From Paragordius varius (Eukaryota; Animalia; Nematomorpha): DNA of 64,000 nt. The notes under the pieces were generated by a model. It saw only the letters and a list, made by a program, of their open reading frames with translations, made no database searches and was not told the DNA's origin. The DNA is taken from positions 2,418,001 to 2,482,000 of the forward strand of contig OZ176052.1 of the NCBI GenBank assembly GCA_964247055.1. Direction: 5' to 3'. Shown one piece after another: positions 301 to 61,950 of this stretch (position 1 is the first letter of the stretch; each line of letters begins with the position of its first letter). The translations under genes and the position numbers were made by a program.

Positions 301-419
301 TTTTACCAAAAATATTGATTTTATACCTTCTCCGAACATTAGACATAATTATATTATATTCCTTACATACCCTTAACATATTTCTCATTAAATTCTCCCA
401 TTCTAAGCACATTCTGTTT

Positions 420-2550: not shown

Positions 2551-3055
2551 AATAAAAATAATGCTTATTTTATGCAATTATATTATAATTGAGTTTAGGA
2601 ATGAAGTGTGTTGAATATTTAACAAAATGCGCGCAAGTTTTGCGATTTTCTAATATAAACAGTTACCCCAAAACTGTAAATAACATTCTTAGATCACTCG
2701 TAAGAGCCAAAACTAAAAGCCTCAATAATCCTGTAACATATTCCTAACAGAATATATATTTTACCAGAAATTATAATTTGCGACACTGTTTACATATATA
2801 AAATTTCAAAGCTAATAATTTCGCAAAATCAAATTTAATTTTAAATAACAGTCGTTTAATCGGCAATCGTATTAGTAAAACATATTAATTATTTATATTA
2901 AAATATTGATCATATTATATTGATACTGTAAAATTATAAAAAATCGAAATATGTTATATAGGCCTAGCTGTATTTTTTTGGGTTAAGCCATCTGATGATT
3001 TATCCCACCATATGAGATATTACGGTAACCGCTGACATACTTTTTTCTCAAGAAG

Positions 3056-4969: not shown

Positions 4970-5007
<38 letters not shown>

Positions 5008-20931: not shown

Positions 20932-23900
20932 AATTATAAAACTACAATCATACCTAATACATAATTTCCATAAGAACTGGAACTTTTTTTATTTAAAACG
21001 GATTTAGGGACAAAAACATTGATTAAAAAATGAACCAAAAAATGATTCCGTCTCTAATCTTTGTAGGTTTAGGCATTCATATACCATTTACAAAATCTAT
21101 ATAAACTTGGTTTATAGGTGTTTTTATCCATAATGTTTTATATAGGATATGGATAGTAATAAAAATCTAACGATTCATATCCAATTAACCAGCCTTCAGT
21201 AGTTTTATTTTAATAAGGGTGCTAAGTTTCATTGTGATTATTTTAAAACAATCTATTAATAATCGTATTGGACAAAATCATAAAAAGAGGTAAAAAAGTC
21301 AAAAAAGGTTTGAAAAAGCTTTACAGTATGCATTTTAATGGTTGCTTATTTGACACCATAGTACGGCAATTTGTTACACAGTAGTGTATCGAAAAAGGAA
21401 AGAAAAGAAATCGTTTTCAATATTTTGTTGTTTTTTCCAAACTCTAATGTGTTGGAAATAGCCCAACTATAATGTGAAATAAACAACCATTAAAATACAC
21501 ATTGTAATACTTGTCAGCCCAGGGTTTTATATCGAAATAGTAATTCTATAGCGTATAACAACGTACATAAGTAAGGTATTATTAAATTATATTTTTATAT
21601 AGGTCTGTTTGCATTCATGCGCGTATTCAGTATTGAGTTAAATGCCGTAAGCCTTGTTAATGCTGTAATGGCGCTGGGGATTTCAGTTGAGTTTGTTTCG
21701 CATATGGTGAGGGCTTTTTCACTTGCTTCTTGCCGTATAAATGCCTCATTAACGCAATACATTTCACAACTTCAAAATAGCAGTCTGCATAATCATGATA
21801 CTACCACCCCAATGGATAGCAATGAGGTTTAATTTAAGTTTATAGGTGGTTTAAAAGGGATAAATTTTTGGTTTTTCTTTTTATAAACACCTAACAGAGT
21901 TTAATATAATTGCTATATGGCAACATGATTTGGAATCATACGAGCAAAACTTAAAAAAAGTTAGGCTGCCTTAGATATAGATTGTGGTAACACAATCTAA
22001 TAAATATTTAACAATTAAATATTTTATATAAGAAAATTAAGGTTGAAGATAATGGTTGTCTTACGAAAAAAAAACTTTGTCCTTATGTTTTTACGTATTG
22101 AATTATTATTTTTTTTATGTAAATCCAATGAAAGTATTTAGAATATATATATATATATATTTGACCACATGATTTACGGAAAAGATTGTTATTATAAGGC
22201 AACGTAAAAAAGTAAGGTTATTCTAAACAATAAGGAGATGATTATATGACGTTTACTTTAAATCTAGTTAATGATATTTTTTATATGTTTCCTTGATGTT
22301 AAATACTAACTATCGTTTTTAAAGAGAGCAACAGAGATATTAATTGGTAACGCATTTAATTATACACTTTTGGATTGAAACCATTAAAATTATGTAAAAA
22401 AAATTTAGATATAGGTAGTATTATTATATAAAAATTTTATCCTTTTATCTTTTGAAATAAAACACTCATCATAGGTTACCTTGTCACCCAAATATCAAAT
22501 ATATTAGTATAAATAAATTTTAAATTTGATTTTATAATAATTCTAATTAAAAACAGGAATCAAATTCAAAAAATGGTAATGGGACTACTTCAGTTTTACC
22601 TGACATTGTATCACAAATTAAAGAAGAGAAAAAGATTATTACGGGCCCAAACTCTTTAACAAACGAAAATAATTCAACTCAAAATGATATTCATGATGCC
22701 AATAGTATTTGTTGCGATAATGTTTTGGATGTTAATAAAGCACGAATTAGGTTATGGGCCGCTAACAGAGCCTTGGTTGATACGGGGAGCAGTGTATTTA
22801 GTGGGATTGCTTTAACAAAATTATTGGGTAAGTTTTGAATTTTTCTTTTTTTTTCATTTAATATTTAGGAATTATTGGTGCTTTATTTTTTGATTCTAAG
22901 GATAATAAATTTTGTGGACAAGGATTTAGACTTTATATAGTCCGTTCTTGTTAGATTTCTATAGTAAAATTTATTTTGAATTTCGTTTATTTCTGTGTAG
23001 AGATTACTAAATATTTTAAAATGTTAGTATTAACTTGTTTTTAACACTTTATTACCTTTGTGAGCAAATTTTCTCCCGACAGTAATTGATTTTAATTGTT
23101 GACTGTCTTACCCCAGAAATTAAAAAAAAATCTTTTACATAATTGTTGGATAACCAATTTTCACAAAAATAACATTGAATACCGTAGTTTTTTTTAACAG
23201 GTAGTTTTAACCTCTTTAATAAAATGTATATTCTGTCTTACATTGAAAAACTTGATGTGTATGAAATATTAAATCATTTAACGACCCAAATTTTTTTTAT
23301 GTAAACAAAATATTTATTACTATACTTTTAGGTATATGCGTGCTAGCTTTCAGTAAATCACGCATATTTTCTCTTTACTATTTTCGCATGTACTTGGGTG
23401 TAGTTATCCTTGGAACACTTCAAGGCCTCTTTTTTCTACCCGTCCTACTGAGTTATTTGGGACCGGTGAGATCTATCAAATCCTACAATAATGTGCAACG
23501 AAATAAACTGAATAAAAGGGTATTTTACTTTCTTTCTTAACAATTATATGAACATATTACTTTTATGTGACATTTTTTTATACGATAAGATTTTTGGAAC
23601 CTAAATATTGCAATATTATTAATCCGTCTTTAAAACTTTTTATATTTATTTTACAAAAATTGGTTTTATATGTTAAGATATTACTAAATTTATTATTATT
23701 GGAGCAAAGATCGTTGTCGATTTATTGCTTTTTCGAGGGTGTATTTTCTCCAGTTTATTCGATTGTAAGTGAGTGATGTTAACTGTTGTAAAGAGAGATT
23801 GGTTTCTTTGGTTAGGTTTTCGATCCAACGCATCTTGCAGCGTCCACGTTTCCTGGATCCTTCGACCTTGCCTGTCATTAGTTGGAATTCCAAGTCATTA

Positions 23901-25189
23901 TCTCTGGTAATGTGACCAAAGTATAAAAATTTCATTTTGAGGCACATGCCAATCAGGTGTATCTCGGGGTTTATTTTGTCAAGGATTACAGTGTTTTTTA
24001 TTTTGTCTTTCCAAGTGATTCGAAGTATCTTCCGCCAGCACCAGTTTTCGAAGGCCTTAATGTATTTTTCGTCTACCTTTTTTATTGTCCAGCTTTCTGA
24101 TGCATATAGCATGCTAGGAAATATTAGGGCTTTAACTAAACGGATTTTTGTTTTAAGTTTGATGTCGTGTGATGACCATAGTTTATTATATTTTATCATT
24201 TTTGTCTTAGCAATTCCTATTCTTCTTTTGATGTCTGGGGTGCTGTTGTTTGTTGTATTTATAAGACTGCCTAAGTAAGTGTATTGGGACACTACTTCTA
24301 TTTGTTGGTTGTGAAAAGATAAGTTGTTATAGTGGTTATGAGCGTTTATAATCATGATTTTAGTTTTTTTAAAGTTGATCGTCAATCCAAATTTTTGACA
24401 TTCATTTGAGAATTCTGTAAAGAGTTTTTTCAGGTTGTCCACTGAGTTTGACAGCAGTATTGTGTCATCAGCATAGTGAAGTGATGATATAATATTGCCG
24501 GCAATGCTTATACCATTAGTTTTATCTATGTTCCGTAATACGCTTTCTATGCAGACATTAAAAAGAGTGGGTGAAAGGACACATCCTTGTCTTAAACCAT
24601 TGTTCATTTGTACCCAATTACTTATGCCATGTGGGGTTTTTATGTTTAGTGATGAATTGGAACAGAGAAGCGGGATTTAGATCCAATCGCGGATGCAGGG
24701 ACATGATCAGCAATATACGTTGGTTATTCGAAAAACAAATTGAATTTCAGAAAGAAACCCACATCTGCTTCATTGATTTTACAAAAGCCTTCGACAGCGT
24801 GAAACACGACACGCTGTGGAAGGCTCAGATGGGAGTTTCAGATCACATTTTAAACATTATTAAATCCCTCTATTCCAATTCATCACTAAATTTATACGAT
24901 TACTAATTAAAATTTTGACTATATTTTATTTAATGATTTTGTGATAAATAATGAAAATTAGAATGGTAAAAAACTTTTGTCTTGCTCTAATAAAACTAAC
25001 TCAAAGGACACTGACAATACAAGTATTAATAAAGCCTCAAATTTATCGACCCGAACGGATTTGAATGAAATTGAAAGCCCATCCCTACTTCAGAACCAAA
25101 GCGTGAAAAATAATTCTGATGCCAAATTACAAACTAACCACGATACTACTGGTAAATTAAATAACTTTTCATGCATAAAATTTAAATAA
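3056..25189 (+). CDS. NPC1: Niemann-Pick C1 lysosomal sterol transporter, ~1738 aa. Exons: 3056-3248, 3275-3759, 6107-6212, 7370-7483, 7971-8138, 8692-8952, 9343-9652, 10133-10241, 10613-10842, 11002-11099, 11426-11519, 12338-12398, 12541-12669, 13232-13414, 14096-14210, 14716-14843, 15320-15535, 15797-15886, 16301-16644, 17532-17772, 18090-18262, 18658-18725, 19292-19444, 19945-20181, 21603-21826, 22557-22827, 23332-23519, 24962-25189. The last exon is less certain; unspliced alternative stop at 23540.
   Basis: Signal peptide; Cys-rich NTD (CCDKEQ, CPACLQN, CDCKDC); [17 protein letters not shown]; [10 protein letters not shown]; AQAWEKEF; [21 protein letters not shown]; VGPPVYFVL; SWIDDY; FMTYHT; [15 protein letters not shown]; GSSVFSGI; [12 protein letters not shown]. 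All junctions are GT-AG and phases are consistent (5217 nt). Confidence 0.96.
3249..3274 (+). other. 26-nt spliceosomal micro-intron (NPC1 intron 1)
   Basis: GTTTATTTTTTAAATTTTATATATAG. Removal joins ORF 3056-3274 to ORF 3289-3810 in frame ([20 protein letters not shown]), restoring the NPC1 NTD. Confidence 0.9.
6276..6713. mobile_element. Foldback/MITE family A2 in NPC1 intron 3
   Basis: Ends TATACCATTTACAATTCAAATT ... AATTTGAATTGTAAAAATGGTATA. Left arm has tandem CAATTCAAATT(C/T)ACCCCCTTGAAC subrepeats. Related copy at 45526-45778. Confidence 0.7.
20324..20616. mobile_element. MITE family B (Tc1/mariner/pogo-like) in NPC1 intron 24
   Basis: Inverted arms GTAAAAATTGAAATTATACGGACAAAA / TTTTGTCCGTATAATTTCAATTTTTAC; same arms at 30130, 36046 and 55526. 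Confidence 0.75.
23683..24895 (-). mobile_element. 5'-truncated RTE LINE with 5' inversion, in the probable last intron of NPC1
   Basis: Minus ORF 23696-24607 ([37 protein letters not shown]) ends in a (TAA)n tail. The upstream RT part ([20 protein letters not shown]) is on the plus strand at 24665-24890. 11-bp direct repeat ACTAAATTTAT at 23683-23693 and 24885-24895. Confidence 0.92.
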
Positions 25190-27220: not shown

Positions 27221-30200
27221 TTAATCCACCATTTCGTCAGAAGAGTTATTTGTCGATTTATGCAGGGGAGTTTTTTCTTTCGTTTTATTATTTGAGTTGC
27301 TACTGTCAAATGATTTCCCTTCAATAATATCCATTATAATGGGTGAAATTTTTTCATGATGTTTCGTTTTGCAAAGCATTTTTAATTGGCATTTTTCATC
27401 CTCTGTTAATGTGCTACAATATTTGGTCACAAAACTCAATAAGCACTGATGCCAAATGACTGGTAAATTATCTGGTATCTGAGAAAATCTATCAAAAAAG
27501 TTAAATGAACATATATGATTCTAAGTTATATAAAAAACAACTTAAACTTATACAGTATGAGTAGTTTTACATCAAAGCATATTCAACAAAGAAAAATTTT
27601 ATTGGCTAATAATAGTAAAAAGTAAAAAACATTTAAAACCAATGATTGTTCCCTTTGCTGAATATATACTATATGGTAAAAATAATGGAAAACTAGCAAT
27701 GTATACTCACTTATATAATCAAAATTATTTCGTCTTCAAAGTTATATAAAAATTAACAACTTAATTTAAGAGATTATAAATGTTTTATCATGACTAATAA
27801 AAAGTTTTTGTTTTTAATGATTCGCTTCTTTTTCAAAAAGGTATTTTTGCTACAATTGCATAGATTTATTTAACCGTAATAAAATATAAAATAATAGAAT
27901 AATTACCCCTGAAAATAATCAATAAAAGCTTGAATGACTCTATCAGGTAACTCATATCCCTTATCTATTAATACGCGTAACATAAGGCAAATAGGTCCAC
28001 TGTAAACTGAAATGGGCTTTTCCATTTCTATTGAGATATAAAAAATAAATGGTATTTCACATTTAAAACGAATTTCGTAGGACAAAAATGACGAAAGCAT
28101 CGTCAAAAAGCGATGATGGCTTAAATTTTGTTATAAGCTATTTTGTTCTATTAAACTTAGAGTTTAAAATACAAAAGCAGTATAAATATTTATTATGGTA
28201 TATTTTGGTTAAATTATTAAAATTTCCCTGTTAAAATCTTCATCAAATAAAACAGACTGTAGTAAAAAAATCGTATAGTATCTACCGAAATCTAATGTAA
28301 CACCTAGTGTTTATGTTCAAATTTTAGTTTCATATCTGTTAAAAAATCATCGACTGCATTTTTCAGAAAATTGCAAGACAGATATATATTGGAATTTGGT
28401 ATGTGATAACGCTAAGTCAAATAGTTTTTCCTAATGATGAATGTTAACAAGCACAAAACTTCTCTGCAATAATTTGACAAAGGATCACATATCACTTTTT
28501 TCTATCTTAATTTTTGTTGAAAAAATTACTATTATACTACCAAATTCTTTTTTGCTACTAATCATGTTCGCTTGTCATTCGTAAAAAAATATGTTGATAA
28601 CGACCCTACCGTATAATATTATTAAGGCTAATTCAAAAATTTGGACATAGGTAAATAACATTGACGCACCAATATAATAAAAACAATCAATCAAAAATAA
28701 CTAGATATTACTTATTTTATGATTTAAAACGGTAAAATTTAGATAACATTAACAAGGTGCATTAGCTAAATTACAATTGCTATTTTAACTTCATTTTTTT
28801 ATTTAGTAGAAAACCTTATTTTCACCCGTTGAATCTAAAAAACACACCTTAAAGTAACATTTTCCTGTATATTAGATCAAAGTTAAACTATAACACGAGA
28901 ATTTATAAGCTTAATTATCAACAAACCTTTCTCACTGTTTTCTTCTAAAACATCTATTCCATTTTCCTCATGGGAAGAATTGGAGTAAGAAATCATTGAA
29001 ATTTCTAGCAATTTGCACATACAAGCAGCGGCATGCAGAGGTGTTATAGATTGTTTTTGAAGGACAGTACAAAATATGTAGGCTTCCCTTAGGGTACATG
29101 CAAAAGATGCATCATTGTTGTTTTTATTAACAACAGTAGTATAATAGTCAGATTTATTAGGATTGTAATTTGATGTTAATTGAAGAGAGCTTTGAGCTAA
29201 TGGAATAATGATACCTTTGAAAAAGGCTCCTTGTTTAAACATGGCTTTAAAGAGGGCCTGTTGTCATATTATATGTGTAAAATCAATTTTTTGAAATAAA
29301 ATTATAGGAATAAATTTTTTTAGGAACAAATTTTAGGAATTACTTTTATTCAAAATGTTAAAAAAATAGCAATTTAGTACATTAAATGACATACCTGGTA
29401 AAGGTGAAAATTGAGTTTTTTATATTCAGCAATATCATCACGAACACGTGGTAACAATATTTTATTGTAAAATCTAATGATGATAACAAAAATATAATTT
29501 TAAAAAAATATTTTGTGTAAAATGCGTGTAACACATATTTTCGCAACATTTAATTTTATTAATTAAATTATAACTGAATAAATCCTAAAATATTATAAAT
29601 ATAAAAAAGGTAAAAAGCACAAAATCAACCCTTTTTAAATTAAGCCCTCTCTTCTTCACTTAAGTTTCAAATTTATTTTTTAAAAAATATTTAGTGAATT
29701 TAATTTTTTTGTTATATGTATATTTATTTCAATGAATTTTTAAAAGCCAAGAATAATATAGGATAAAATATACTAGTTGAGTTAAATTTGGTTGTCAATA
29801 AAAACTTTAAAAAATATATTAAGTAATTAAAAAAGATGGTGTAATATATATATATATATATAATACATATATTAGTAACATCAAAACTTAAAAATTATCC
29901 TAATTCTAAAACATTTTAAAATTTATTACACATTTTCAAAAATTATTTAAAATAAATAATTGTTTAATTAACCTTTGAACTAAACGAGAATTAAGATTTG
30001 AAGCAAATAATTTGGTAGCAGCATTCATGGCGGCAGAAGACCAATCTGTAGGATTCGTTAATTCTAAAACAGCTTCCCAATCAGATAGGGAAGGGATCAC
30101 CTGTTTTATGGACAAATAAAAAGAAAATACAGTAAAAACTGAAATTATACGGACATAACGTACAAATATGTAAAGACAAATATTTTTTTCTAAAAGACAA

Positions 30201-33200
30201 CCATACTTTTTAAATCTTAATTTATTTCAATATAACTAACTCATTGTTTTGAATGGCAAAGTGTGAAATAGAGATATATATTACTAATACAATCAATTCT
30301 ATATTTAACAATTGTAACTAAGTAGCTTATATGGGAAACATTAAGGTTTAAATAAGTATGGTTGTCTTTTAGAAAAAAATATTTGTCTTTATATACTATT
30401 CAACGACTTAGACTGCTTTCTTATAAAAATCGAACAGACAGAGACAGAAAAGAATGGAAAACTATAATACTCTCTCCTCCTTTGAAAGAAGAAAATAGCG
30501 TATAAAGGAGATATAAATTATTATCATTCCTATTAATTGATAATAAATATGTAAATTCTGCAAAATATTGAATAAACAAATGTTCAATTTTGTTTTAGAC
30601 TACTTTTGTTAATTCTCAAACAACTTCAGATAATATGGAAGTTTTTTAAAAAAATAATGGACCCCATGTAGGAAAAATACCTGGCTTAATATTCGTATCA
30701 TGACCAAAAAAAATAAAATTTTAAAATTAAATATATATTGTAATATTTTAAGAATATATTAAAAAATATTAATCGGATTTTTTTATTATGCTAAAAGATC
30801 AGTGTAAGCTTATTAAAATTTTCAAAAAAATTTCCATTCATTTTGTAATAAAATATCCATAAATCCAATTAATTTGTTTCATATAAATACATAAAGCATA
30901 TAAATATAATTTTATATTTCACATCACATATTAGAACACTATTTAATTTTACTTTTTGTCCTACTTAATAACCCTGGAACAAAAACACCATTTAAAGCTA
31001 GAGGTAAATCATAAAATTTTTTACATCATTATAAAAGGACAGACACATTTTTTCTAAATAGCCATCAAAAAACGAAGAAAAACAAAAAAATTTACTTTAA
31101 ACGCTTTAGGCAATTTTCCACTCCTATATTGGGCCAAAACTGAGCCCACACTTTTGTAAAGGGTTTGAATTTGTGCATTTCTTAGCATTGGTGTAGTGGT
31201 ACAAGAAATGGAACTTTGAGTTTTTGGAAAAATACCGCTAAGAGTATCAGACATTAGTTCACTTTTACGTTCGGTGAGCCTTTCAGAAAATTGTTCAGCT
31301 AAAGCTTCGCGCACACTAAAATCTGATGACATAAATTGTTCAAATGCATCTATTTCAGATTGCGACATTGCCGTTTCTTCTGGTTTCTAAGAGGGGACGG
31401 TATATAGACAAAAAATTTTTTTATTATAGGAGAAAACCACATTTTTAACTGAATTTTTTTAAACTATCGTTTTAGGTTTCAAAATTGAGAATAGGTAGGT
31501 TATTATACAATAAAACATAAAAAGTAAAATATTTCCTATAATGTTAATCACATTTAACATGATTTATTCAAGATAACCTATAATTTAGGGTTTTTGATGA
31601 TGATAGGAGGTTAAAACACTAAATATTAATAAAACGGCTAAACGTTTAAAATTTAAGGGAAACATTTTCTTTAAAAAAACCATATTTTTCAGACATGAAA
31701 TTCAAAAATAAACTATTATTTTGGGATTTTAAAATCGGGAAGAATAGGGGGGTTAAAATACAATCAAATCATAATAAACACAGAAAAGTAAAATATTTAT
31801 ATATGCATAAATTATTATAAGATTTTTTCCAAATTTTATATCTTCTTGAAAAAATGATTATTATAATATTGGTGTAACCCAAAAATTTAATTATAATTAA
31901 ACAATTTATAAATTATTTTATAGAATTATATCTTTCTTTACGTATGTGAGACTATTATTATATTTATTTTAAAAAAGCGTGATAATTTAATTACTAACGT
32001 TATGGATAACTTAATAAAGAATAGTGATGTAAATTAGAATTTAATTTTATTTCTAATCTAGGCTTATAGAGGAATCAAAAACCAAAAATGTGGGTTTCTT
32101 TATTAAAAATATTATTATTAATTATAATCTTTGTAATTTTCATTTTCACAGTTAAAAAATTAACAGTTTATATCAGTGGTACTCACCAAAAAAATTTGAC
32201 GGGCCAAATAAAATATATTTTTTTTCGAGGGCCATAAACCTTTAATGGCAAATATTCCATAGCTATTTGACAAATATGCACATATTTATACTCTAAATCA
32301 GCACGAATTTTTTGCGTATCGCATGATCAAACTAAAAATCGTTTTGCACCATTTAGTTTAAAAAATTAAAATATTTTGATATTAACCAAAAACAAGCCAA
32401 TCTTAATACGTCGTCCATATGATCATCGGTTAAGTATATGTATTCATGACATACTTCATTTTTAAATATGCCGTCTCACACGTGTAAGTTGAGGGAAAAA
32501 CATTTAGGATAACTGAACACATTTTTTTATATTTTCATATTTATTTGGCACATCTTACCAAAACTCTACATATCTTTCTACTCTACGATTCTCCTTGAAT
32601 ATAGCCTCCAAATTGGAATTTTTGAAATCTACGAATTCTTTAATGATATGCGCCTGATCAAAACCGAAATGCTCAAATCGCTTAATATTGGATCCATATG
32701 CCAAGGATTTTAAATGAGTTGTAAGCAATTTTATTTTTAAAATTAAATCTGGATTTCATCTCATTATATAAATGTTAAATGATTGTCTATTAAATTAATC
32801 TCCGCGGGAAATTTTATATTTTCTTCATGAATCGTTTTAAGTGTTGGAAAATATGGGAGTATTTTATTTATAAAATCTGGATTATATATTGTTAATTTTT
32901 CTTTAAGAGCAATATTTGATTATCAAATTTTTGCTCCTTTGAAGACTTGTATTAAAAATACTAAGTTTGTAAGTAAAGTCGGAAAGGTTAATAAAATCCA
33001 CCATTTGTCACTATTAATTTCCTCGTCAATTCTATTTTTATGATAACAGAATTTCATAACTTAAAACAAAAAATCTATTTAATACTTTGCAAGGCTTAGC
33101 CACCTCACACCGGTGTACAAATAATATCATCAAACTCACTGTGGACATCTTTCAGAAGGTTTTTAATATACGGGATTTAAATACTCTGCCACGGATGTGG

Positions 33201-35242
33201 TTAATCATATCCACAACCGTTTTAATTACTGAATTTAATGATTCATCTTTTACACGCGAAACCAAGTTTTGCTGATGAATGAGGCATATCGAAAAAAGTG
33301 CTAACTATTTCGAGAAAACCTTCTTTCGTGGTATTATTCATTGGTACGTTGATTATGTTGTCTGCAAAATCTCACGAAGAGCTCATATTGAGGTGTTGAA
33401 CTAATATTAGTCCTAGAATCAATAGCATTAAAATATTTGCAGTTTTTCAGAGTTAATATTGTATTGTTAAAAATATATTTAGACATATTTTGAATGGGCC
33501 GAGCACATGTTTCAATCAGAAAGTTTAATTTTTTTAAATTTGCCTCATGATTTGATTTTTATTATGGAATTTATCAACAAAAAAATGCAACCATTTATAA
33601 GATATTCTTTTATTAGTTGGGAATCAGTAAACGTCATATTTTTCCTAAAATATAGCTTTCATACGAACCTAATGTTAAAGCTTTTTCCTGGGAACTATGG
33701 ACATAATAGATTCCTATAATTGCTTAATCTTTTTATATTTTTCGTTTCTTTCCTCATGATTTTCAGGTAATTTATGAAAATGGATTGTAAAATATCTTTC
33801 AATATTTTTTTATAATTATGTTGCCCTTACATATATGGCAGGTAACAACATTTTTATTTTAAACGACAAAGAATTTTTCTTCCCATTCTTTTTTAAGAAG
33901 CGATTTTCATCGGTAATTTACGTTTTTTAATTAGATGTCATCCTTTGAATTTATGTTCAAATATTATGTAGATTTTTTGAAAAAATTAGGAATATAATTT
34001 GAATTATGATATAATAAACAGGTCGAAATTTAATGATGTTATTTTGAAAAATATTTTATGGGAATAAGTTATAAAAAATGATGCAGGATAGCAATGAAAA
34101 GAATATGTGTATGGAGTTTGAGTGAAATGCTTGCTTAAATACAAAAAAGGAATGCAATAAAAATGTTAAAATAAAGAAAATAGAATACAGAAACAGAAAC
34201 ATGTGCCAAAATTTCGAAATCATTCTAATGTATGAAAATTTTTCTACATTCAAATTGGGTAAAAAATAAAAGTAACGAAAATTCGTTTATGTGTATTTTA
34301 AAAATTCATCAATAAAAAAATAATATAAGTATCAATTTGGTCATAGGGCAATTTAAGAGCGCTCTAAAGGCCGCATGCGGCCCGCGGTTTGAGTATCACT
34401 GGTTTATATTTTTATTATAGGTTGTTAAAAAATGCTTTATTATAAATTGGTTTTGCCGTAGCTTTTACATTTTTTATAAAAATAAATTTTGTACGAGAAA
34501 GATCATAAAATTTTTTTTTAGATGAAATAAAATTTTAGCTGACTAAAGATTTCTCAAAATCCATTCAATATTATAATTTTTTATATATTAAATATCTACG
34601 CAGTTAAACTCAAAAGAACTTGATTTTTATAATTAGCTGTAAAAAATGCAGATGGATGGCGAAAAAATTAGAGAAATGTAAAAGAAAAGACACATAACAT
34701 AATCAGAATATTACTTTTATCAAAAAACATAAAGATAAGAGATGTAAATTAATAACACGAAATACTTCACATTAGTAATCTATATATTTACAAAAATGGA
34801 GGGATCAAAAATAGGGGTTTTCATAACAAAAAATGGTCTTTTACGTTGCAAAAATTGTGTCAAATTTTATTTATTACTGAATATCTTACCTGATGATCGG
34901 AGACATGTTTAACTTTGGGTTTATCTTCTTCGTTATAGGTAATTAAATTGATGGATGAATCCCAAATTTCTTTTTGAGATGGAGGGTTCACAGCAGATTC
35001 TTGCTCGTTCTCTTCTGATAATTGTTCACGCGCTTGGGCTAAAATTTTGTTTGTAAGTTTAGAATCAATGACCTGTAAATTATTATATGCAAAAATCTTA
35101 CCAAACTATCCTCCTCAAATTTAACTTTCTTAGGCCTTCTAAATTTTTCTTTCGTTTGTTTTTGAAGCTGTTCATGTAAGGGCCCACTCTTTCTTTTTTC
35201 AAACCCTGGTTTTTTGTCCAATCTTCGTTTTAGTTTACCCAT
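27221..35242 (-). CDS. BYSL: Bystin (Enp1), 40S ribosome biogenesis factor, 513 aa. Exons (minus): 35242-35102, 35072-34890, 31386-31096, 30100-29973, 29473-29395, 29257-28927, 28027-27907, 27488-27221
   Basis: [103 protein letters not shown]. Phases consistent (1542 nt). Confidence 0.96.
30130..30395. mobile_element. MITE family B, right arm truncated, in BYSL intron 3
   Basis: TA|CAGTAAAAACTGAAATTATACGGAC... left arm; right arm stops at AAATATTTGTCTTTATA. Confidence 0.65.
32174..34401 (-). mobile_element. Decayed hAT transposon of the Buster/SPIN/Charlie group in BYSL intron 2
   Basis: TIRs CAGTGGTACTCA / TGAGTATCACTG; perfect 8-bp TSD GTTTATAT (32166-73, 34402-09) fitting NNNTANNN. Minus-strand remnants [37 protein letters not shown] at about 33070-33300. 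Confidence 0.9.
35073..35101 (-). other. 29-nt micro-intron (BYSL intron 1)
   Basis: GTAAGATTTTTGCATATAATAATTTACAG; removal gives [23 protein letters not shown]. Confidence 0.9.
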
Positions 35243-35274
35243 TTTTGGTACGGTTTACATGTGAAGTCCTTCGC
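35243..35274. promoter_or_regulatory. 32-bp spacer between the divergent BYSL and NOC3L start codons; putative bidirectional promoter core
   Basis: TTTTGGTACGGTTTACATGTGAAGTCCTTCGC lies between CAT (35240-42) and ATG (35275-77), with central palindrome ACATGT and E-box CATGTG. Promoter function is inferred. Confidence 0.7.
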
Positions 35275-38200
35275 ATGGGATTTAAAAGAAAACGCATAAG
35301 TAAAACCAAACCAGTACGTTCAGCAGATTCAGATGAAGAGGCTGAAATTGATTTTATCCAAAATATTTATGATGAGGATTCAAATTTATATTATATTTCC
35401 AAGTATTTGTTTGAAAGTTTATATTTTATAGAAAATTAAATAAAGCTGGTGTAAAGTTAGAAGATGAATTAGAATGCGAAAAAAATCCAAGAATTGTTAA
35501 ACAATCAAATTTGAGAGCACTCCTGCCGATTAAGAAGGATGGAAAAATTATACCAATCTTTGATGCCAAACCTAAAGTCGTATATGGTATGTATATTTAT
35601 TTAAATTATCGTAGCTGATGATTTACCGACTCCTGTGCTAAAGAAAAAGACCGAAAAACAACCCATACAAAATTTTGAAAACTTGGAAGAATTTAAAATG
35701 TATCTTTCACGTGTTTCAAATCAAATATTGTCGAATCCAGAACAAAATGTATACAGTTTTTTATAATATATTGAGTATGATTGAATATAAATTAACCAAT
35801 CTATTTAAAAAACTTGCACATTGATAACATGGCATCAAAATATTAAAAAAATTATTAAAATTGGTTAAAAAACTTAAGAATATATTAAAAATTGCTAATA
35901 ATTTTTTTCCTGGTTATTGTCTCCCTGATCAATTTATTAAAAAATTTATTTTAGCTGTAGAATAAAAACAAGATATTTTACTAAATTGAAATAAAAATGC
36001 GATGTAACAATATTGATATGGAACTTTTTTAAAAATCAAAATTTACAGTAAAAACTTAAATTATACGGACAAAACGCAAAAAAAGGCAAATATTTTTTTT
36101 AAAAGACAAGCATACTTTTTAAAATCTAAATTTTCTCCATATAAATGATTTATTTTTAATTTATGATTGATTGTTTTACCAATATATATCTCTATTCCAT
36201 ACTTTGCAATTTTAAACAATTATTTAAATAATAAAAAATCAAGATATAAAAAGTATGGTTGTCTTTTAAAAAATATTTGTCTTTATACGTTTTGTCCGTA
36301 TACTTTTAATTTTTACCGTATTTTTATAATTTAGCCTCTTTTATAAAATTTTTATTTGGAGCAGAATTTTTTATAATCCTAATGTATTAATATCAATTTG
36401 AAGTTCGCTTAATAGATTCGATTGGAGAGACTAGTTTTATAATTTCATCAAAAGAATTTATTTTTTGGCATTTAATCAATCCCATTTATAGATTCATTCT
36501 ATTACAAAACTTATACGTTACCTTCAATGTAAAAACCGTCCCTTTATATTGAGTCAAGATAACTCAATTCATTCTCAAGAGGCTAACACGCAAAAAGCAA
36601 TTATATTAATTATAGCTTCATTGACTGAGATATTTCGAGATATTATCCCGGGATATAAAATCCGGAAAGCCACCGAACAAGAAAAAGATCAAATGGCAAA
36701 GAAAGAAACGAGAGAATTACGAAAATTTGAGGAGCTCCTGCTAAACTATTATGGCAAATTTTTTGCAATCACAAAGCGTTTTGCAACTCAAAAAAGTATT
36801 TTTAATTTCATGCATAAGATATACAGAAAAGTTTGAATATTTTTTTATTTCCTATAAATTAACTTAACATGAAACATAAAAAGAATGCTGTTTTCATATT
36901 AAACTGATTTGTTAAGAGATCTCTTGCTCGAAATCTATAATAAAACCTAGTTTTATGTAAAAATTAAATTTTATATTGACTTATTCATTTATACAATTAT
37001 ATTTCCTGTTACCGACTGCATTTATACCAAAACTGTAATGATATTTTTATATACAAATTTGTTAAAAGTTGCGCAGTGTTAACAACCACTGAACTAGTCT
37101 TTGATTACTATTGGCGAAGCGTATAACATATTATTTTATTTTTTGTTAAAACATTGACCATGCAAATATAATTTTACAAAAACTATCTTGTAAAATGGCT
37201 AGTCATTTATGAGCCATCTCTACTATTATTCGATCATGACAGCGGTTTCATATTGGCAATATTCTTATTTTTCCCAATAATTAAAAAATGGTCATTCTAC
37301 TTTTTACGGTTATTGCTTAAAGATTGTAAAAAGGAATTTATTATTTTTTTGTTTTGGAGAACTTTTGATTCGCCTAAATATTTGAGATGAGATTTTTTTC
37401 CTAAGTTAATAGTTCAGCACTTAAAAAATTATGTTTTGATATTGAGAAATACCCCTAGCTATTATTTTTTGTAGTATAAATATATAAAACACTCATGCAG
37501 AAATAATGAATATATTTTTTTGCATATCATTAAAACATAGGGTTGGTTTTTGAATACTGCTAGTTGAGGTATTAACTCTTCTTGGCCGCACCACATTTAT
37601 TAAATATTCAAAAAAATGGAAATAGTACATGTGGGTATTTAAATACATAATTTTATTTTTATATACACTTTAATCGCTATATTTATTCGTGTAAGGCTTG
37701 CTAAGTGTTTTGTTGAGTAACGCTTGCTGAAACATTTAAGTTTGAATATTTGCTGGCCCTGTAACGCTTCGCTGTGACTTAGTCTCACTGATATTTGCAA
37801 TAAATAGATGTGATGGAGATAAAATATGAAAAACATATAAAATAAAAAGTCTTTAATTATTCTTTTACGGGTTTTCGCATTGTTTACTCGAAAGTGACCA
37901 TATTTAAACTGTCCCATATGAAAGTTAATATTCAATTATCATTGGATTTCATTTAAGATTTCGTTTTTCGAAATTATGGTTGAAAGTTTTATTTTGTTGT
38001 GTTCACACAGCTGGGATCAAAGGATATAAAAAGTAACTTATTTTTTTTTAAAGGAAAGAATGATATACAAATTCGCCAGAAATGTGTTAAACTGAACTTC
38101 TATGTCTTCTTAAGTTTTTTAATCATCTCCAAAACCACGCCATTTTTGTATGGCGTCTCAGTTTTGAACCGGTAGACCCCTACCCATAGACCTATATGGA

Positions 38201-41200
38201 AAAGCGCTGAGCTAAAATCTTTTCCTTTATAGGGCAAATATTTGGAATCATCTTTAATTCCATCGTCTCATGGGGTTTTTGAAACCTCAACACTAAATTA
38301 TCGTTATGTGATGGCGCATTTTTAGGGGAATAAAGGGCCCAAATTAACGGCTGATTAAAAAGAGCCCGACCTTAATTTTTATCTAGTTAGGGTAATATTT
38401 CAAGCTTTTAATGAACTTATATGGCTTCATGAATTTTATGTAAATTAGTTTCAAAACAACGCAATTCCTATATAGTGGCGCAGTTTTTGGCTGGGAGCTC
38501 CTTACCCAGGGGGTAAAAAAAGCGTTGGGCAAAATTTTTGTCTTTATTTGGGGAATATCTGGAATTATCATGGATTCCATATGTTCCTATTAGACACATA
38601 GGTTTTCTGAAATTTGGCTCCAAAGGCATGTTGTATTGATATGATGTCGCAGTTTTATGCGGGTAGTCCCCTAACCAGGAGCGAAATAAAAAAACGCTCG
38701 ATTAAAATTTTTGCCTTAATTCGAGGAAAACCTGAAATCATGACTGATTCTATATGCTCACGTGGGATTTTCGAAAAATTGTCTCAAAGCCAATAAGTCA
38801 TTCTATGGTGGCGCATTTTTTAGGGCAAGGGCCTAATTAATCGGTAATTTAATAAAACCACTTTACTTAAATTTTTACGGATAATATTGCAAGCCCTTAT
38901 TGAACTCATTGGCCTGATATGTTTTCTAAATTTTGCCTCCATACTCAGGCTGTATCGATATGGTGCGGAGTTGTAGGCGGATAGCTCACTGCCCAGAGGC
39001 CAATGTAAAAAAGACGTTTGCTTAAAATTTCTGCCTTTATAGGGGAATGCTTGGAATCGTCATTCATTCCATATGTTCTTAATAGTTTTTGGAAGAATGG
39101 CTTCAAAACTATAGTTGAATGATAGCGCATTTTTTAGGGCGTAAAGGGCATTGACGGCTAATTTTAAAAAACCGCTCGACTTAATTGCCTTTTTACGGGT
39201 AATAATTCAAGCTCTCATCAAACTTATATGGCCTGATAAGTTTCTGAAAATCAACTCCTAAACAACGCAAATTTGATATGGTGGCGCAGTTTTAGGCGGG
39301 TAGCTCCCTATCCAGAGGCTGATACAAAAAAGGCGCTTGATTAAAATTTTGCTTTTTACAGAGAATACCTGGAATCATGATTGATTCCATATGCTCTTAT
39401 TAGTTTTTGGAAAAATTGCCTCAAAATTAAAATATCATTCTATGGTGGCGCATTTTTTCAGGGTGTGAAGGGCCTAATTAAAGACTAATTTTAAAAAGCC
39501 GCACGCTAAAATTTATGTCTTGTTACGGGTAATATTTTAAGCACGGATGGAACTCATATGGCCTGATAGGTTTTCTGAAATTTAGCCCCAAAGGCACGCT
39601 ATTCGATATGACGGATCAGTTTTTAGAATAAAAAACACACGTCTAAAGTTTTTGCCTTTTAACAGGGAATACGTGGAATCCTTATTGAATTTTTCGGTCT
39701 CATACCTTGGGCGAAAAATAAATTCAAAAAATTATTTTTGTAGGCAGTTTTTTTTGAAAAAAATGGCATTTTACGGGGGGAGCGGGTAAAAAGAGTGCCT
39801 AAATCAAAAAAGCGGACCGACTATGTTCGGCGCAATAGATAAAAAAAGTAAAAAAAAATCATATTTGAAATCAAATGATTCAACACGTTTTCCGGAAAAT
39901 TGTCTCAAAAACACGCTTTTTGTGGACTTTTGTTTTCAAAAAAAACCGTTTTTACACGGGGTCGACCCGAACTGGGGGCCTAATCCAAAAAAAGAGCTAT
40001 TGTCGGGGCATTCATAAATGATTATATTTTTTAACATTTGGATTTAAATGGGTCTACCAGTTTTTCGGAAACAGATCACAAAGTCAGCATTTTCCATTTT
40101 TATAAAAATATAGATATAGCCTAATGTAATAGGTCATTTTTTAATTATTATAATATTTTACATTGCTTTACCGTATACATATGCTCAAAAAGTTTTAAAA
40201 TAGTGAAAGCTATATTAATTTATTCTAGAATATCGAACCGCTAAAACAAATCAAACTTCCATGCTAATTATTGCTCGTTCACAACTAATTATCCAATCTT
40301 GGGGCGAATTAGTACGGTGTAAACCACACTTTAATTGTAACAAAGAAATTATACACGCCCTTGTCCCCAATCTAAATCACAAAATTGAAAAGGTATAACA
40401 ATACTTTACACAAATTTTATATTTCTATTATAATAAGACAATAAATAGTAGATAGCCCTCATAATGAACCCAATTATGAATCAAACATGATATCCGCATT
40501 ATGACATTTTTTATTAAATTACATTTTTAAATCTAAATTATAATATTAAATTTTTTATATAACAAGGATTAATTGATTCCCTTAAAAAATATAATTAATA
40601 AAAAATACATTTTTTTGTTTTTAAGACTTTAAAACGGCTTAAAAATATCCATAGACTAGTTACTTTGTGGCAAAATATAAAGAACAATTAGCGAATCGGA
40701 ACCAAATATAATACTAATTATTTAAAAATTCGCAATTTTAAATAGCCTAATTAGATTTTTGAAAAAAAAGATTCTTTTGGTAGGAGTTGTAATCTACATT
40801 GGCGTTTCAATCTTATATTCAACCAAAAATTAAAATCTTTAAAATGTATATACTATGATGGCTATTTCATATACACATTTTAGATACGTGAAGTTGCAAT
40901 GGACGTTATTAAGGGTATTTTGTTAAAGGGTGATACTGGGCACAGCAACAATGTTAGTTTATCACTTGAAATTGTCCAAGCTATCAATCAATATTTACGG
41001 GCCAAAAAATTTAGGGCCGTTCGTCCTGACGTGTTAGATGCCTTACTTTGGTTAAGGATTGATGATATAAATGCCCATATAGCGGCTCAAATGTCGCAAT
41101 TCAAAGAATCTGATTTAAAGGCCAGAAAACTAAAAAAAATTGACGTTAAAGGGAAACGGGATAAATTTTCCAAGAAAAAAGTTGTTTCTGCCACCAATAA

Positions 41201-41952
41201 AAAAATGTCTGCGGGCGATTCAGCAAAAAAGTTTTTATCACGCAAACAGTTTAAGGTAGTGATTTTTAAAGATGTTTTTGATTTGGTGTATGATGTGTCT
41301 TTTTTAGTTTTAATAATAAGGGATATTTTGCACGGTTAAAGCTTAATTTTTTGATTCCAAATGCAGTGTTTTGTAATACTTGAGACAAATATTTTACTTT
41401 TTTAATACCATGCTATTTGGTTTTTTAAACACAAATTATCATTCTTTTTTGTGGTATGACAATGAACCACCATATCGATCTAAAAAATTCGAACCTAAAA
41501 TAAATCATTGGTTACCGATATTAAACTCATAATATTTTTATCATCTTTATTTTTATTCTTTGAATTCAAACAATAACTTACTATTTAAAATAATCATTAG
41601 AAATCTAAGGCACTGGAACAATTTAAACGTGAAGTTGATACATTGGGAAACGCGGTATCCCTTAATTACAATAAACATAAAAACGATGCAACAATATGTA
41701 ATACCATCTTCACCATATACTTTAAAATTTTACGGAGTTTCCATCAAACTTACCATACAAATAATAATGATAATAATTTAAATGATGACAACACAGTCAT
41801 TGATAATAAGCGATTAAGTGGTAAAAGTATTGCATTACTTTCCGCAGCTCTAAGGGGTCTGGCTCAGTTTGCTCGTTTGATTAACATTGAAATGTTTCAT
41901 GACTTGATTGATACTTTGTATCAAATTTCAATCAATAAAGTAATTACGTGGC

Positions 41953-41995
<43 letters not shown>

Positions 41996-43996
41996 GGAAT
42001 CGAAATTAATAGATTATTGTTGACTGTATTTTAAATTTGTTTAATTAATAGTTTAATAAAGTAATTAATCTAGTGTTTTTATGTTTTATGACATTATTTT
42101 ATACTTAATCGATTAAACTTTTTTAAAATAGTATATATAACTATATATACTTAACAAAATAATTTGGTTTATTTAGTTATAAAAAGGTAAAACTTATATG
42201 TGTTTTGCTGTTTATATTTTTGAAAATTCATCTCATCCAATGAGTATACTAAATAAGCCTTACAATATATTTTAGTAACAAATCCAACATACTTAAATTT
42301 TTATACAAATTAATAGATTTTTATTACATAATGTATCCCATATTGTTGCCTAATTTATCAATATAGGAATTAAAGATTAGAGATCGATTAAATGCCATAT
42401 ACACGACGTTTGTAATCTTGCGCGGTGGTCAACATCAATACACGGCTGCATTCAATATCGATATGAACCGTTTTTATCAATCCCTATATAGCCTTTTGTT
42501 CAATTCAGTTTATATATATTATATATATATATATATCATAAAAGTTATAAAATATTTTTTCATATGCATTTAAAAATAATTTTTAAATGCATATGGTTTG
42601 TATATATAAGTTTTTGTTATCTTAGCAGTTATCTAACAATCCTTACATTTTTTATTTAGCAAACTGGACCGGCAAACGCGACAACCAAATTTACCATTAC
42701 TGATTTGACAGCTTTTGCAAAGTGTCTTGACATTTGTTTTATTAAAGGATCATCATCAACCACCTCGTCTTTAAACTCCAACAGCAATAAAACTGGCCAT
42801 CGAACAATGCCAAAATATAGTGCTGAGACGTTGATTGCCAGGTTACTTAAACCCGATGAACGCGTTCAGATGATTAGAGTTTCAGCTTTTATACAACGCT
42901 TGTGTTATTTCGTTGAAAATTTAACCGAATTTTGTACCATTCCATCAGCAGCTAAATGTGTAACTTACAACATGACATGTAATGTAGAAAATTCGGAGGG
43001 AATTAAAAATAGTTCTCAAGGGAATGATGCCAATATTAAATTGATTGCAAATGGTTATGATTTGTTTCAAAGCATACTTTTTACCCTGATGGCAAAGTTA
43101 TTACAGGTAATGTATGATGTAATTATAGTTAAGATTCATACATACGTGGTGAATAAGGAAACAAAAAAACAAATTTTATTATCATATAATTACACAATTT
43201 TAAATTAATCCGAGAACTTTTTTTAATATGATTCTGTGCGACTTTTTTTTCCTTTATTCACGAAATAATTAATGTATTTTAATTACCAATTTTTTATCGT
43301 TACCCACCCACACAATATATAAAAATATTTTGTATATAGGTATATTTAGTTTCAGTCTTTACGAACAATTTACATTATCCATGTTTTTAGGCTTTCCCAA
43401 CCTGCTTGCATTTGTTATCAAATAATTTGGACATAACTTCTATTAGTAATAAATCACGGAATCAAATCGAACTTTTATCGGCTTTTGAATTTACTGCTAA
43501 TCAAAGTTTTGCCATAGGCTTGGATCACCATCAGGTTATTAATGGCGTTAAATGGATCCATAATATAATTCTCAACGTATGCTCACAAAAACCTGAAAAT
43601 GCCAATATGCCAAAAAATATTGATGAATTATCATCAACAACAAATATCATGGAGGTATTTTTGATGAAAGGATTAACGCCTTGGATATATAAAACGATTG
43701 ATACCCTACAAAAAATGGAAATGACTGAAAATGGCCTTCCTCTATCTTCTCTCCAATCACAAACGACAAATAATAGTTATCAAAGAATAGTACAAAATTT
43801 TAATGCAAACACTTACTCTCATTGTTTGGAAAAGGCTTATAAGGTGTTGGTTCATTCACAAACAACGGGTACGACGATAAAATGGCAACCTCGTGATTTC
43901 TGGAAACCGTTTTGCGCTTTTAGTGAAGCGACCCCTCAAAATTCAAAGTTCCATAAAAAACAAAAAAGTTTTAATTTACCAACACGATCTAAATAA
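35275..43996 (+). CDS. NOC3L: Nucleolar complex protein 3 homolog, 929 aa. Exons: 35275-35402, 35432-35586, 35615-35748, 36492-36795, 40229-40392, 40884-41255, 41601-41939, 42367-42507, 42660-43106, 43391-43996
   Basis: LLPIKKDGKIIP, ILSNPEQNI, SLTEIFRDIIPGYKIR..EQEK..KKETRELRKFEELL, KPHFNCNKEII, VRPDVLDALLWLRI, IFTIYFKIL, GLAQFARLINIEMFHDL, FNIDMNRFYQSLY. Phases consistent (2790 nt). Confidence 0.94.
35403..35431 (+). other. 29-nt micro-intron (NOC3L intron 1)
   Basis: GTATTTGTTTGAAAGTTTATATTTTATAG; removal opens the frame into KKLNKAGVKLEDELECEKNPR..LLPIK. Confidence 0.88.
35587..35614 (+). other. 28-nt micro-intron (NOC3L intron 2)
   Basis: GTATGTATATTTATTTAAATTATCGTAG; removal continues the frame to ..ILSNPEQN. 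Confidence 0.88.
36046..36318. mobile_element. MITE family B in NOC3L intron 3
   Basis: TA|CAGTAAAAACTTAAATTATACGGACAAAACG ... CGTTTTGTCCGTATACTTTTAATTTTTACCG|TA. Confidence 0.78.
38110..40100 (+). repeat. Dispersed ~2-kb element with an internal ~320-bp (2 x ~160) diverged tandem array, in NOC3L intron 4
   Basis: GGCGCATTTTT recurs near 38313, 38808, 39124 and 39447; GGCGCAGTTTT-like motifs near 38475, 38645, 38962 and 39281. An inverted homolog lies at 60481-61950. Confidence 0.8.
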
Positions 43997-51102: not shown

Positions 51103-52613
51103 TTATTTTGGGTTTGACACAGCTGTTACCACGATTTCATCAAGTTGGACGGAAAGAGGCATACGTAGAGCACTCATTAGGGCATCTGAAACATCTTCGG
51201 GTCTTAGATAAATTTTACTTGCAAAAAATTTATCGACTTCGGATTTGTCTAGAAAAATTTAAAAAATATTAAATTATAATTCTATTATTGATATAAAATA
51301 ATTGGCAATCTGGAGTTGAGTATATCCAAAAAACTACGTAAATTTTATCAGGCCATCAGCAATTTGTGTCAACTTTATTCACTTAATAAAAGAAAAAATA
51401 ACATTAATTAACATTTTTTTAAAAATATATGAATCTTTCAAAAATGGAATGTAAGATTGTTTGTATTGCCATTGGTTGCTGGGTAAATTTCACTCCAATT
51501 AAAATACATAACCAATATAGTCATATTATTGAGACACATATTATGTGCAAAATGAGTTTATATATAAATTTAAAACATGCAGTCCCCCTCTTCTCTGCTC
51601 AAAAACAAAAAAGTCTATGAAAAAACTTTTATTACCCTTGACCACTACTGACCTCCGTGCCACCCGTAATTTTACTACAATCATGCTTAATTATAACTTT
51701 AAAACAAAAGGTAAAAAACAAACTTGCAATCATTTCTTTGTCCCCCTTTTTGGCCAAATGATCAGCAAAGTTTGTTTTAATCCACCCTGGGCACAGAGTA
51801 ACTACTCTGATACCCCTAACATTTGGATGGTATTCATTCAATTCACGGCGTAAACATTGAGTCATAGCTGTTATAGCAAATTTAGACGCTGTGTACATGT
51901 GAAAAAATGTATCATTTCCTTCACCATCTTGATTGGGAAATAGAATGACATCCCGACCCACGATACTGCTCACATTAACAATAATTCCATCACGAATCCC
52001 CGCATGAGCCATGAGTATAATGGCTTCTTTAGCGCAAATGGAGAGGCCATATATATTAATTTTAAGCGTTGTCCACCAATGTTGATAAGTTTGTTTTCGA
52101 TTAGCCATTTCTTTTTCGCTGTACGGATCAAGTCCTTTACAATTTTTTTCGCTCTTTAAAAAGTAATCTGGAAAGGCTAAACCCGCGTTATTTATACAGA
52201 TGTGAAGGGCCTTGTACTTTTTCCAAATGTGCGCAAATAGGGCCATAACTTGGTCCATTTTACCCACGTCACATTGTATGGGCTCTATGGTTGTACCGCC
52301 GGCTTGGGTAACTTCTTGTACCAATGGCTACATTACATAAATGATAGTGTAAAATATAAAATTGTAAAGACAATTACAAATATAATTTTTAAACAATTTA
52401 TTTTTAAACTTGTTTTTTTTTTCAAATATAACTTAAATCGTTTTGGGATGCAAAATAAGGAATAGAGAGGTGATCTAAATACTGTATATCAACAATTGTA
52501 CAGGTTGTAGAAAAAAATAATAGGTTTAAAAATATGGTTTATTTATCTACTTATGTTATGTAATTATATTTTTTACTGTATATTTAATATGGGTAAATTA
52601 ATTAGTATATATA

Positions 52614-52651
<38 letters not shown>

Positions 52652-60269: not shown

Positions 60270-60480
60270 ATATTTTTAGTTTTTAATTTGTCTCCAGCAT
60301 CCTTTATACTAGGTAATTCTCAAGAAAATTTACCTATAAATTATATTTTTAAGCAAAGTATGCATTTGTCAAAAATATGTTTTTGTTGTCATATCTAGCA
60401 TCAATTATTTTTTATCCCGAAATCTTTACATTTTTGCGCTTAGAAGGGCAAAAATTTTTGGTCCACATCTAAAGATTAAT

Positions 60481-61950
60481 CTATATCTATTTATTAAAAA
60501 ATGGAAAATGCTTGCTTTGTGATCTGTTTCCGGAAAACTGTTAGACCCATTCGAATCCAAATGTCGAATAATATAATCATTAATGAATGCCCCGACAATA
60601 GCTCCATTTTTTTGATTGAGGCTCCCAGTTCGGGCCCACCCCGTATAAAAAACGGTTTTTTTGAAAACAGAAGTCCACAAAAATCGTGTCTTTGAGACAA
60701 TTTTCCGGAAAACGTGTTGGACCATTTGATTTCAAATATGATTGTTTTACTCATTGATTGTGCTGAACATAGTCGGCTTGCTTTTTTGAAGTCACTCTTT
60801 TTACCAGATCCAGTAAAATGCCATTTTTTCAAAAAAACCAAATCGACAAAAATAATTTTTTTCTATTTTTCCCCCAAGGCAGTAAAAATTCAATGAGGAT
60901 TCCAGGTTTCCCTAAAAGGCAAAACTTTTAGTCGTGCGTTTCTTTTATATTAGCTGCTGGGTAAGGAGACCGCTAAAAACTGCCCTTTCATATCGAAATA
61001 GCGTACCTTTGGGGCTAAATTTCAGAATATCTATCAGGCCATATAACTTCCATAGCTGATTAAAATATTACCCGTAACAGGACAAAAATATGGGTCGTTT
61101 TAAAATTAGCCGTTAATTTGGCTCCTCATCCCTGAAAAATGCGTCTCCATAGTATGATTTTTTAGTTTTGAAGCAATATTTTAAAAACTAATGAAAGCAT
61201 GTGGAATCAATCATGATTCCAGGTATTCTCCGTAAAAAAGGTAAAATTTGATCAAGCGTTTTTTTGTTTCGACTCTGGTTAGGGGCCGCGTTAAGCTGCG
61301 GCACCATATCGATACAGAATGCCTTTGGAGCCAATCAGAAAACCTATGAGACTATGTGAGTTCAACAAGGGCCTTAAATATTTATTATTCCGTAATAAAC
61401 ATGTATTTTAGCGTAGGGGTATTTAAATGAATCGCTAGTAAAGTTTTACCCCCTGAAAAATGCACCGCCATAGATCTTTTTAGTTATAAGCAAATTTCCA
61501 AGAACTTATAGGAACAAATGGAATCCGGCAAAAATTTTGCCCAACGCTTTTTATGCCTGCCCTTGTAAGGAGCTACCCGCCAAAAACTTCGCAACTATAT
61601 AGAAATTGCATTGTTTTGGAGCTAATTTACAGAAAATTTATAAAGCCATATCATTAAAAGTTTGAAATATTACCCGTAACTTGTCAGGCGTTTTTTATTA
61701 GGAGTTAATTTGGGGCCTTTATGCCCTAAAACTACGCCATCTTTTAACGATTATTTGTTGAGATATTTTTTAGAATAACCTATGAGACGATGGTATTAAA
61801 GATGATTCCAAATATTTGCCCTATAAAGCCAAAGACTTTAACTCAGCGCCTTTTTCATATAGGTCTATGGGCAGGGGTCTACCGGTTTAAAACTGAGACG
61901 CCATATAAAAATGGCGTAGTTTTGGAACTAACTTTCAAAAACTTAAAAAG
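60481..61950 (-). repeat. Inverted homolog of the 38110-40100 tandem-array element
   Basis: 60481-60640 is the reverse complement of ~39960-40100, and 61780-61925 of ~38130-38275. Internal spacing is 320 bp (e.g. 60975/61295, 61135/61455). Confidence 0.8.

Follow-up and report, generated by a model that had tools for sequence, protein, structure and literature searches.

Bystin and NOC3L lie head-to-head with start codons 32 bp apart in the hairworm Paragordius varius

The 64,000-nt stretch of the Paragordius varius genome analysed here (the window; contig OZ176052.1 of assembly GCA_964247055.1, positions 2,418,001 to 2,482,000 of the forward strand; ~26% GC by base composition) carries the genes for bystin and NOC3L on opposite strands, with their 5′ ends facing each other and their start codons separated by 32 bp. 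The bystin ATG reads as CAT at 35240-35242 (minus strand; first codon ending at 35242), and the NOC3L ATG occupies 35275-35277 on the plus strand, where it opens an N-terminus of MGFKRKRISKTKPVRSADSDEEAEIDF (longer stretch, MGFKRKRISKTKPVRSADSDEEAEIDFIQNIYDEDSNLYYIS). An in-frame TAA is located 15 nt 5′ of the bystin ATG; the NOC3L reading frame stays open 5′ of its ATG, and this extension lacks an in-frame ATG. With facing 5′ ends well below 1 kb apart, the two genes have the geometry of a bidirectional pair, of which they represent an extreme variant. The original prediction, made from this sequence, had described the same anatomy under the same gene names, and its coordinates and spacer agree with ours; the introns of up to 3.5 kb that it reported are borne out by bystin intron 2.

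Both gene models were searched exon by exon. Six bystin exon segments matched the Pfam Bystin profile PF05291 (positions 6-67, 66-114, 108-136, 160-197, 194-225 and 223-283), five of the six individually exceeding its cut-off of 28.8 bits; the profile is thus covered from 6 to 283, as expected of a Bystin/Enp1 member. Bystin exon 3, used as query in an exhaustive search of proteins, retrieved a 465-aa protein, P0001, called bystin-like in its source (Gordionus sp. m RMFG-2023), and residues 115-439 of this protein match six window exons at 44-66% identity (tblastn), the match to animal bystin being colinear. NOC3L was assigned to the NOC3p family by a PF07540 match of 65.1 bits (cut-off 26) at 36549-36836. 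Single exon segments all missed an E-value of 0.01 for the CBF domain (PF03914), a domain present in the Gordionus orthologue, and Gordionus NOC3L is colinear with the window only for the first exons, to 41012, weak matches further 3′ being out of order. The reading frame across the joined NOC3L exons 1 and 2 was checked, and each gene carries a 29-nt first intron about 130-140 nt past its ATG. The features of the locus are as follows.

27224-30226, minus strand: other bystin exons, matching Pfam Bystin profile positions 66-283
31096-31386, minus strand: bystin exon 3, PF05291 match of 31.9 bits, 44% identity to Gordionus bystin residues 115-203
31387-34889, minus strand: bystin intron 2, 3,503 nt, full of high-copy repeats
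34890-35072, minus strand: bystin exon 2, sequence read
35073-35101, minus strand: bystin intron 1, 29 nt, gtaag...ttacag, frame kept only if spliced out
35102-35242, minus strand: bystin exon 1, 141 nt, 47 codons, ATG 35242-35240, MGKL N-terminus as in Gordionus P0001
35243-35274, no strand: spacer separating both ATGs, 32 nt, TTTTGGTACGGTTTACATGTGAAGTCCTTCGC, read directly
35254-35265, both strands: near-palindrome TTTACATGTGAA, centred ~1 nt off the spacer midpoint
35275-35402, plus strand: NOC3L exon 1, 128 nt, tblastx match to Gordionus NOC3L exon 1
35281-35288, minus strand: TATA-like TTTTAAAT within NOC3L codons 3-5, a weak candidate from a comparison of two species
35403-35431, plus strand: NOC3L intron 1, 29 nt, gtatttg...ttatag
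35432-35586, plus strand: NOC3L exon 2, including LLPIKKDGKIIP, by tblastx and reading
35587-35614, plus strand: NOC3L intron 2, 28 nt, read directly
35615-35748, plus strand: NOC3L exon 3, 3′ end approximate, followed by long introns
36549-36803, plus strand: NOC3L exon with the NOC3p domain (PF07540), 51% tblastx identity to Gordionus
40285-43993, plus strand: later NOC3L exons, partly delimited

The same gene pair was found in Gordionus (GCA_954871325.2, chromosome OX940786.2, 15214839-15242189; locus L001), where bystin and NOC3L (807 aa, with NOC3p and CBF domains) are likewise arranged head-to-head and share N-termini and first-intron positions with Paragordius varius. In contrast to the window, 3,893 bp separate the two start codons in Gordionus (L001 6107 and 10001), with a long terminal repeat (LTR) element in between, and the first introns measure 41 and ~43 nt rather than 29 nt. 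The two 129-nt LTRs (L001 6699-6827 and 9438-9566) are 98% identical, a primer-binding-site-like TGGCGACG lies just 3′ of the 5′ LTR, and the element contains a zinc-knuckle open reading frame (ORF) and an integrase-domain ORF. Internally it looks short (2.9 kb), and its flanks showed no clear target-site duplication. Beside it, the spacer also has GC-rich 'CCGGCCCG' repeats (L001 ~6244-6590). Subtracting the LTR element leaves the Gordionus genes still ~1 kb apart.

As judged by orthology, both ATGs are the true starts. P0001 begins with MGKLNRTLEK, which the window's bystin N-terminus resembles by eye, and the other animal bystins retrieved also start with MGK. Exon 1 of Gordionus NOC3L reads ...SDEEAEIDYIQNIYNDENLFYISK (fuller stretch, MTVKNKKYVASESDDSSSDEEAEIDYIQNIYNDENLFYISK) and ends, as does exon 1 in the window, at the same ...YISK splice position; NOC3L intron 1 is matched in position by the ~43-nt Gordionus intron (by eye) and bystin intron 1 by the 41-nt one. 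For either gene, the next in-frame methionine is in exon 3, beyond the conserved N-terminal segments, and a later start was rejected because it would remove these segments. The interval from the upstream stop to the bystin ATG contains no AG, so no upstream coding exon can splice in. The original prediction had allowed that a true start codon might lie further downstream and leave an ordinary-sized promoter, which the match of N-termini and first introns to the Gordionus orthologues excludes. Since the ATGs are fixed by orthology, the leaders cannot lengthen by moving an ATG.

To place the pair among relatives, three outgroups were checked, and in each the gene 5′ of bystin differs from NOC3L: a filarial nematode (Acanthocheilonema; annotated gap 5′ of bystin, 872 bp), a tick (Ixodes; 629 bp) and an annelid (Owenia; 338 bp). 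Head-to-head adjacency is hence common to the two hairworm genomes and absent from these three outgroups, while the 32-bp spacing is either specific to the Paragordius varius lineage or was lost in Gordionus. Between the two hairworms, pair and orientation are kept, but the spacing is not. The pair persists without tight spacing; because the Gordionus genes have stayed neighbours across 3,893 bp and an intervening retroelement, a distance of 32 bp is not needed for its persistence, and the proposal that the spacing couples the output of 40S and 60S factors is weakened. Conserved adjacency as such is compatible with a degree of shared regulation, or with mere inertia. In Ixodes scapularis (L003 1-9371) and Owenia fusiformis (L004 3008-9662), bystin faces an adh_short dehydrogenase gene, which hints at an old pairing of bystin with a short-chain dehydrogenase/reductase (SDR). 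An SDR gene also lies in the window (51632-53282, minus strand, 16 kb off), but its similarity to the tick and annelid neighbours is merely generic, and it was discarded as the old bystin partner.

The two hairworms also differ in where their repeats are placed, namely in introns in Paragordius varius and in the intergenic spacer in Gordionus. In the window, repeats occupy the first long introns of both genes (31985-34545 in bystin, 35925-36318 in NOC3L) and are very high-copy elements; over 31985-34545, the summed contig depth in a DNA run (X3) ranged from ~155 to 5,000, compared to ~2 on exons, and for the two intron regions taken together it reached from the hundreds to ~5,000. NOC3L exons 1-5 extend over 5.2 kb in the window (35275-40431) vs. 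~1 kb in Gordionus (L001 6107-5056). For Gordionus montsenyensis, a genome with 26.93% GC, 63.79% repeats and an RNA-seq-based annotation has been described, in a preprint silent on introns, intergenic distances, untranslated regions (UTRs) and bidirectional promoters (10.1101/2023.06.26.546503). Word searches returned no relatives for bystin exon 2 or for a NOC3L exon of 146 aa, none of eight exact window ORFs was present in the protein collection, and a word search with P0001 did not find a second hairworm bystin; P0001 itself came up in the exhaustive search alone. One candidate for the latter, P0122 (51% identity), was rejected, because other animals come at least as close to the window. 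Comparison of a short exon with solved structures gave chance-level matches only.

As to where transcription starts, we infer, tentatively, that both genes may initiate in or beside the near-palindrome TTTACATGTGAA, with leaders of ~16-20 nt. Bystin and NOC3L would then be served by an ultra-compact, interleaved bidirectional promoter: RNA polymerase II would start both genes inside the 32-nt spacer, most likely at TTTACATGTGAA; the leaders would abut or cross by a few bases; and the -30 region and other upstream signals of each gene would fall in its partner's first codons, so that, for instance, the TTTAAA in NOC3L codons 3-5 would serve bystin. An older head-to-head pair would have lost intergenic DNA in the Paragordius varius lineage and so become tightly spaced.

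Several features of the spacer and its flanks are consistent with such initiation. On each strand, TTTACATGTGAA gives TTYACATG, which by eye fits YYANWYY at six of seven positions and may be read as initiator-like, with CATGTG as a putative E-box variant; it also comprises an ATG directly followed by a stop codon in both directions (ATG-TGA on the plus, ATG-TAA on the minus strand). The TTTAAA at -44 from the bystin ATG compares with a TTATAA at -40 from the Gordionus bystin ATG, the latter in partner-free intergenic DNA, and these TATA-like hexamers would fit a start ~10-20 nt before the ATG in both species. With A at -3 and G at +4 (AAAAATGGG), the bystin ATG is in a strong context, suited to a short leader, whereas NOC3L has a C at -3. 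Upstream ATGs on the bystin strand are found at 35260 (ATG-TAA), 35276 and 35297, the last two opening a 13- or 20-codon frame over the main ATG; a bystin start beyond 35276 would thus add a frame overlapping its own start codon, while a start in the spacer would meet an ATG-stop at most.

Further candidate signals did not stand up. The motif GGTATAACTA is absent from the 32-nt spacer, and GGTA-containing words 5′ of the four ATGs (both genes, both species) share neither position nor orientation. An inverted repeat (35224-35235 and 35298-35309) was dismissed as a signal, arising as it does from two lysine-rich N-termini read in antisense. A sigma-70 and terminator scan, not relevant to a eukaryote, gave nothing beyond chance.

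Weighing against initiation within the spacer is, first, its size, as 32 bp cannot accommodate two pre-initiation complexes simultaneously. None of the runs that a search listed as containing the locus is recorded as RNA, and in three runs presumed to be RNA and bearing the same species label (X6-X8), no contig matched 31000-36900, even at 85% likeness. The motifs were matched by eye, and TATA- and initiator-like words are common at 26% GC. Moreover, the longest CAT-free stretch in the 64-kb window (35295-35664; 369 nt) lies just 5′ of bystin, across NOC3L exons 1-3, and the only two plus-strand ATGs within 187 nt 5′ of NOC3L (35174 and 35259) are both ATG-stop pairs, the base rate of an ATG directly followed by a stop being 7.6%. 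Both of these would suit longer, overlapping leaders.

Such leaders would result from deep transcript overlap, a possible, if rather doubtful, arrangement in which each gene would start inside its partner's exon 1 or beyond, giving antisense transcription over tens to hundreds of bases and a promoter made of the partner's coding DNA. Past 35297, the bystin strand is free of ATGs for the length of that longest gap, and the ATGs at 35276 and 35297 sit in a weak context (C at -3, C at +4), from which scanning could leak to the strong main ATG. Divergent starts, besides, usually flank nucleosome-free DNA that is much broader than 32 bp. Yet the frame opened at 35276 or 35297 overlaps the bystin ATG and would reduce translation, and antisense transcription risks interference and double-stranded RNA. 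The CAT-free gap and the ATG-stop pairs are post hoc points, nine CAT-free gaps of at least 300 nt occurring in the window. In addition, both Gordionus genes are intact at a distance of 3.9 kb and without an adjoining partner exon, on which neither therefore depends there. The sequence features at hand do not discriminate between short leaders that abut and a deeper overlap. Taken over both strands, the nearest upstream ATGs (35174 and 35259 on the plus, 35260 on the minus strand) are all ATG-stop (~4e-4 for three of three, calculated post hoc).

Leaders added by trans-splicing had been listed in the original prediction as a third possibility, and we consider it improbable that the 5′ ends come from a trans-spliced leader, or from a remote non-coding first exon joined in cis; in that case, the true starts would be far off and the 32-bp gap uninformative on promoters. 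A good acceptor-like TTCGTTTTAG/T (the slash marks the would-be junction) lies about 41 nt 5′ of the NOC3L ATG, and Nematoda, the sister phylum, does trans-splice. The regions upstream of both genes are pyrimidine-rich (67% for NOC3L, 58% for bystin), but this follows from the Lys/Glu-rich N-terminus that the partner encodes on the opposite strand. The AGs upstream of NOC3L are a TTTTAG at -43 and a GAAG at -10, and the only AG in the 100 nt before the bystin ATG (GCGAAG/G at -28) is a poor acceptor compared with the four cis acceptors read at the locus, all of which are YAG. As a pair, the genes thus do not show the consensus 3′ splice acceptor shortly 5′ of the ATG that spliced-leader genes should have (bystin, AAG/G at -28; NOC3L, TTTTAG at -43). 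A full-text literature search found no paper linking Nematomorpha with trans-splicing or a spliced leader, and no spliced-leader RNA of Rfam was found in the 64-kb window, a weak point given this small span.

The junction itself was compared with sequencing runs. Short X3 contigs match the window at 100% identity over 35063-35233 and 35740-36072, with no contig reaching across 35234-35333, and the depth in the 35137-35333 bin is due to the 35063-35233 contig alone. X3 is filed under another organism label (B), and the two labels may cover one species. That the arrangement stems from a misassembly or a miscalled start codon is extremely unlikely: although no read or contig spans 35234-35333 and the locus was not found in protein collections, Gordionus carries both genes adjacent and in identical orientation, the two proteins agree with their orthologues from the first residue onwards, first-intron positions are conserved, and the runs X1 and X2 contain 76% and 71%, respectively, of sampled words of 32300-38200.

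New are the proof, from orthologues, that both starts are correct, and the contrast with Gordionus. If transcription truly started within the 32 bp, animal RNA polymerase II promoters could squeeze into, and share, protein-coding exon sequence, and translation would work from leaders of <20 nt, with a bearing on the positions of core promoters, the +1 nucleosome and first introns. Gordionus provides a natural contrast, its identical pair being split by 3.9 kb and a young retroelement, and this two-species comparison makes the question testable. Were a spliced leader found instead, trans-splicing would reach the sister phylum of nematodes. It is also conceivable, though on the unlikely side, that near-zero-spacer divergent pairs form a genome-wide system in this hairworm lineage: a single short, palindromic initiator would fire both ways to give almost leaderless messages, with the remainder of the core promoter in the partner's exon, and, as the genome otherwise tolerates kilobases of repeats in and between its genes, compaction would be targeted at promoters rather than being general. 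For hairworms, the literature search turned up no account of near-zero-spacer gene pairs.

Elsewhere in the window, a retrotransposon lies at the start (1-2457, plus strand), followed by a long NPC1-like gene (3029-23537, plus strand; named by eye from its translation) that is tail-to-tail with bystin, and a reverse-transcriptase fragment (23699-24676, minus strand) is located between the two. GC-richer blocks (32-36%) at 38000-40100 and 60400-62000 resemble each other in their decayed ORFs (e.g. ...QHVFRKIVSKTRFLWT.VFKK..FYTG...), a single repeat family occurring in both a NOC3L intron and the SDR/ATG2 intergenic region.

Among known systems, nematode outrons and SL1 would equally explain ATGs packed without visible leaders, but a usable YAG acceptor is absent 5′ of bystin, and our literature search returned no such report for Nematomorpha. 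Mammalian genes with a translation initiator of short 5′ UTR (TISU) offer a parallel to the short leaders proposed for initiation in the spacer: leaders of ~10-20 nt would need a strong ATG context such as the A at -3 and G at +4 of bystin AAAAATGGG. The full TISU consensus, which we take to be SAASATGGCGGC, is absent here, however, and NOC3L deviates with its C at -3. In compact protists such as Giardia and microsporidia, leaders comprise a few bases or transcripts overlap; as at the present locus, ATGs almost abut, promoter signals lie in or beside coding DNA, and initiator regions are AT-rich. Those genomes, however, are compact throughout and nearly intron-free, in contrast to the 3.5-kb introns and multi-kb intergenic stretches of the Paragordius varius window. 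In layout, the pair resembles the bidirectional promoters of animals, defined by starts <1 kb apart, in that two housekeeping genes diverge from a short region and their pairing is kept in two species. In known bidirectional pairs, though, transcription starts are usually ~100-200 bp or more apart, to which two leaders add before the ATGs are reached; here, 32 bp is the distance between the ATGs themselves, and this in a genome whose introns can be kilobases long and full of repeats.

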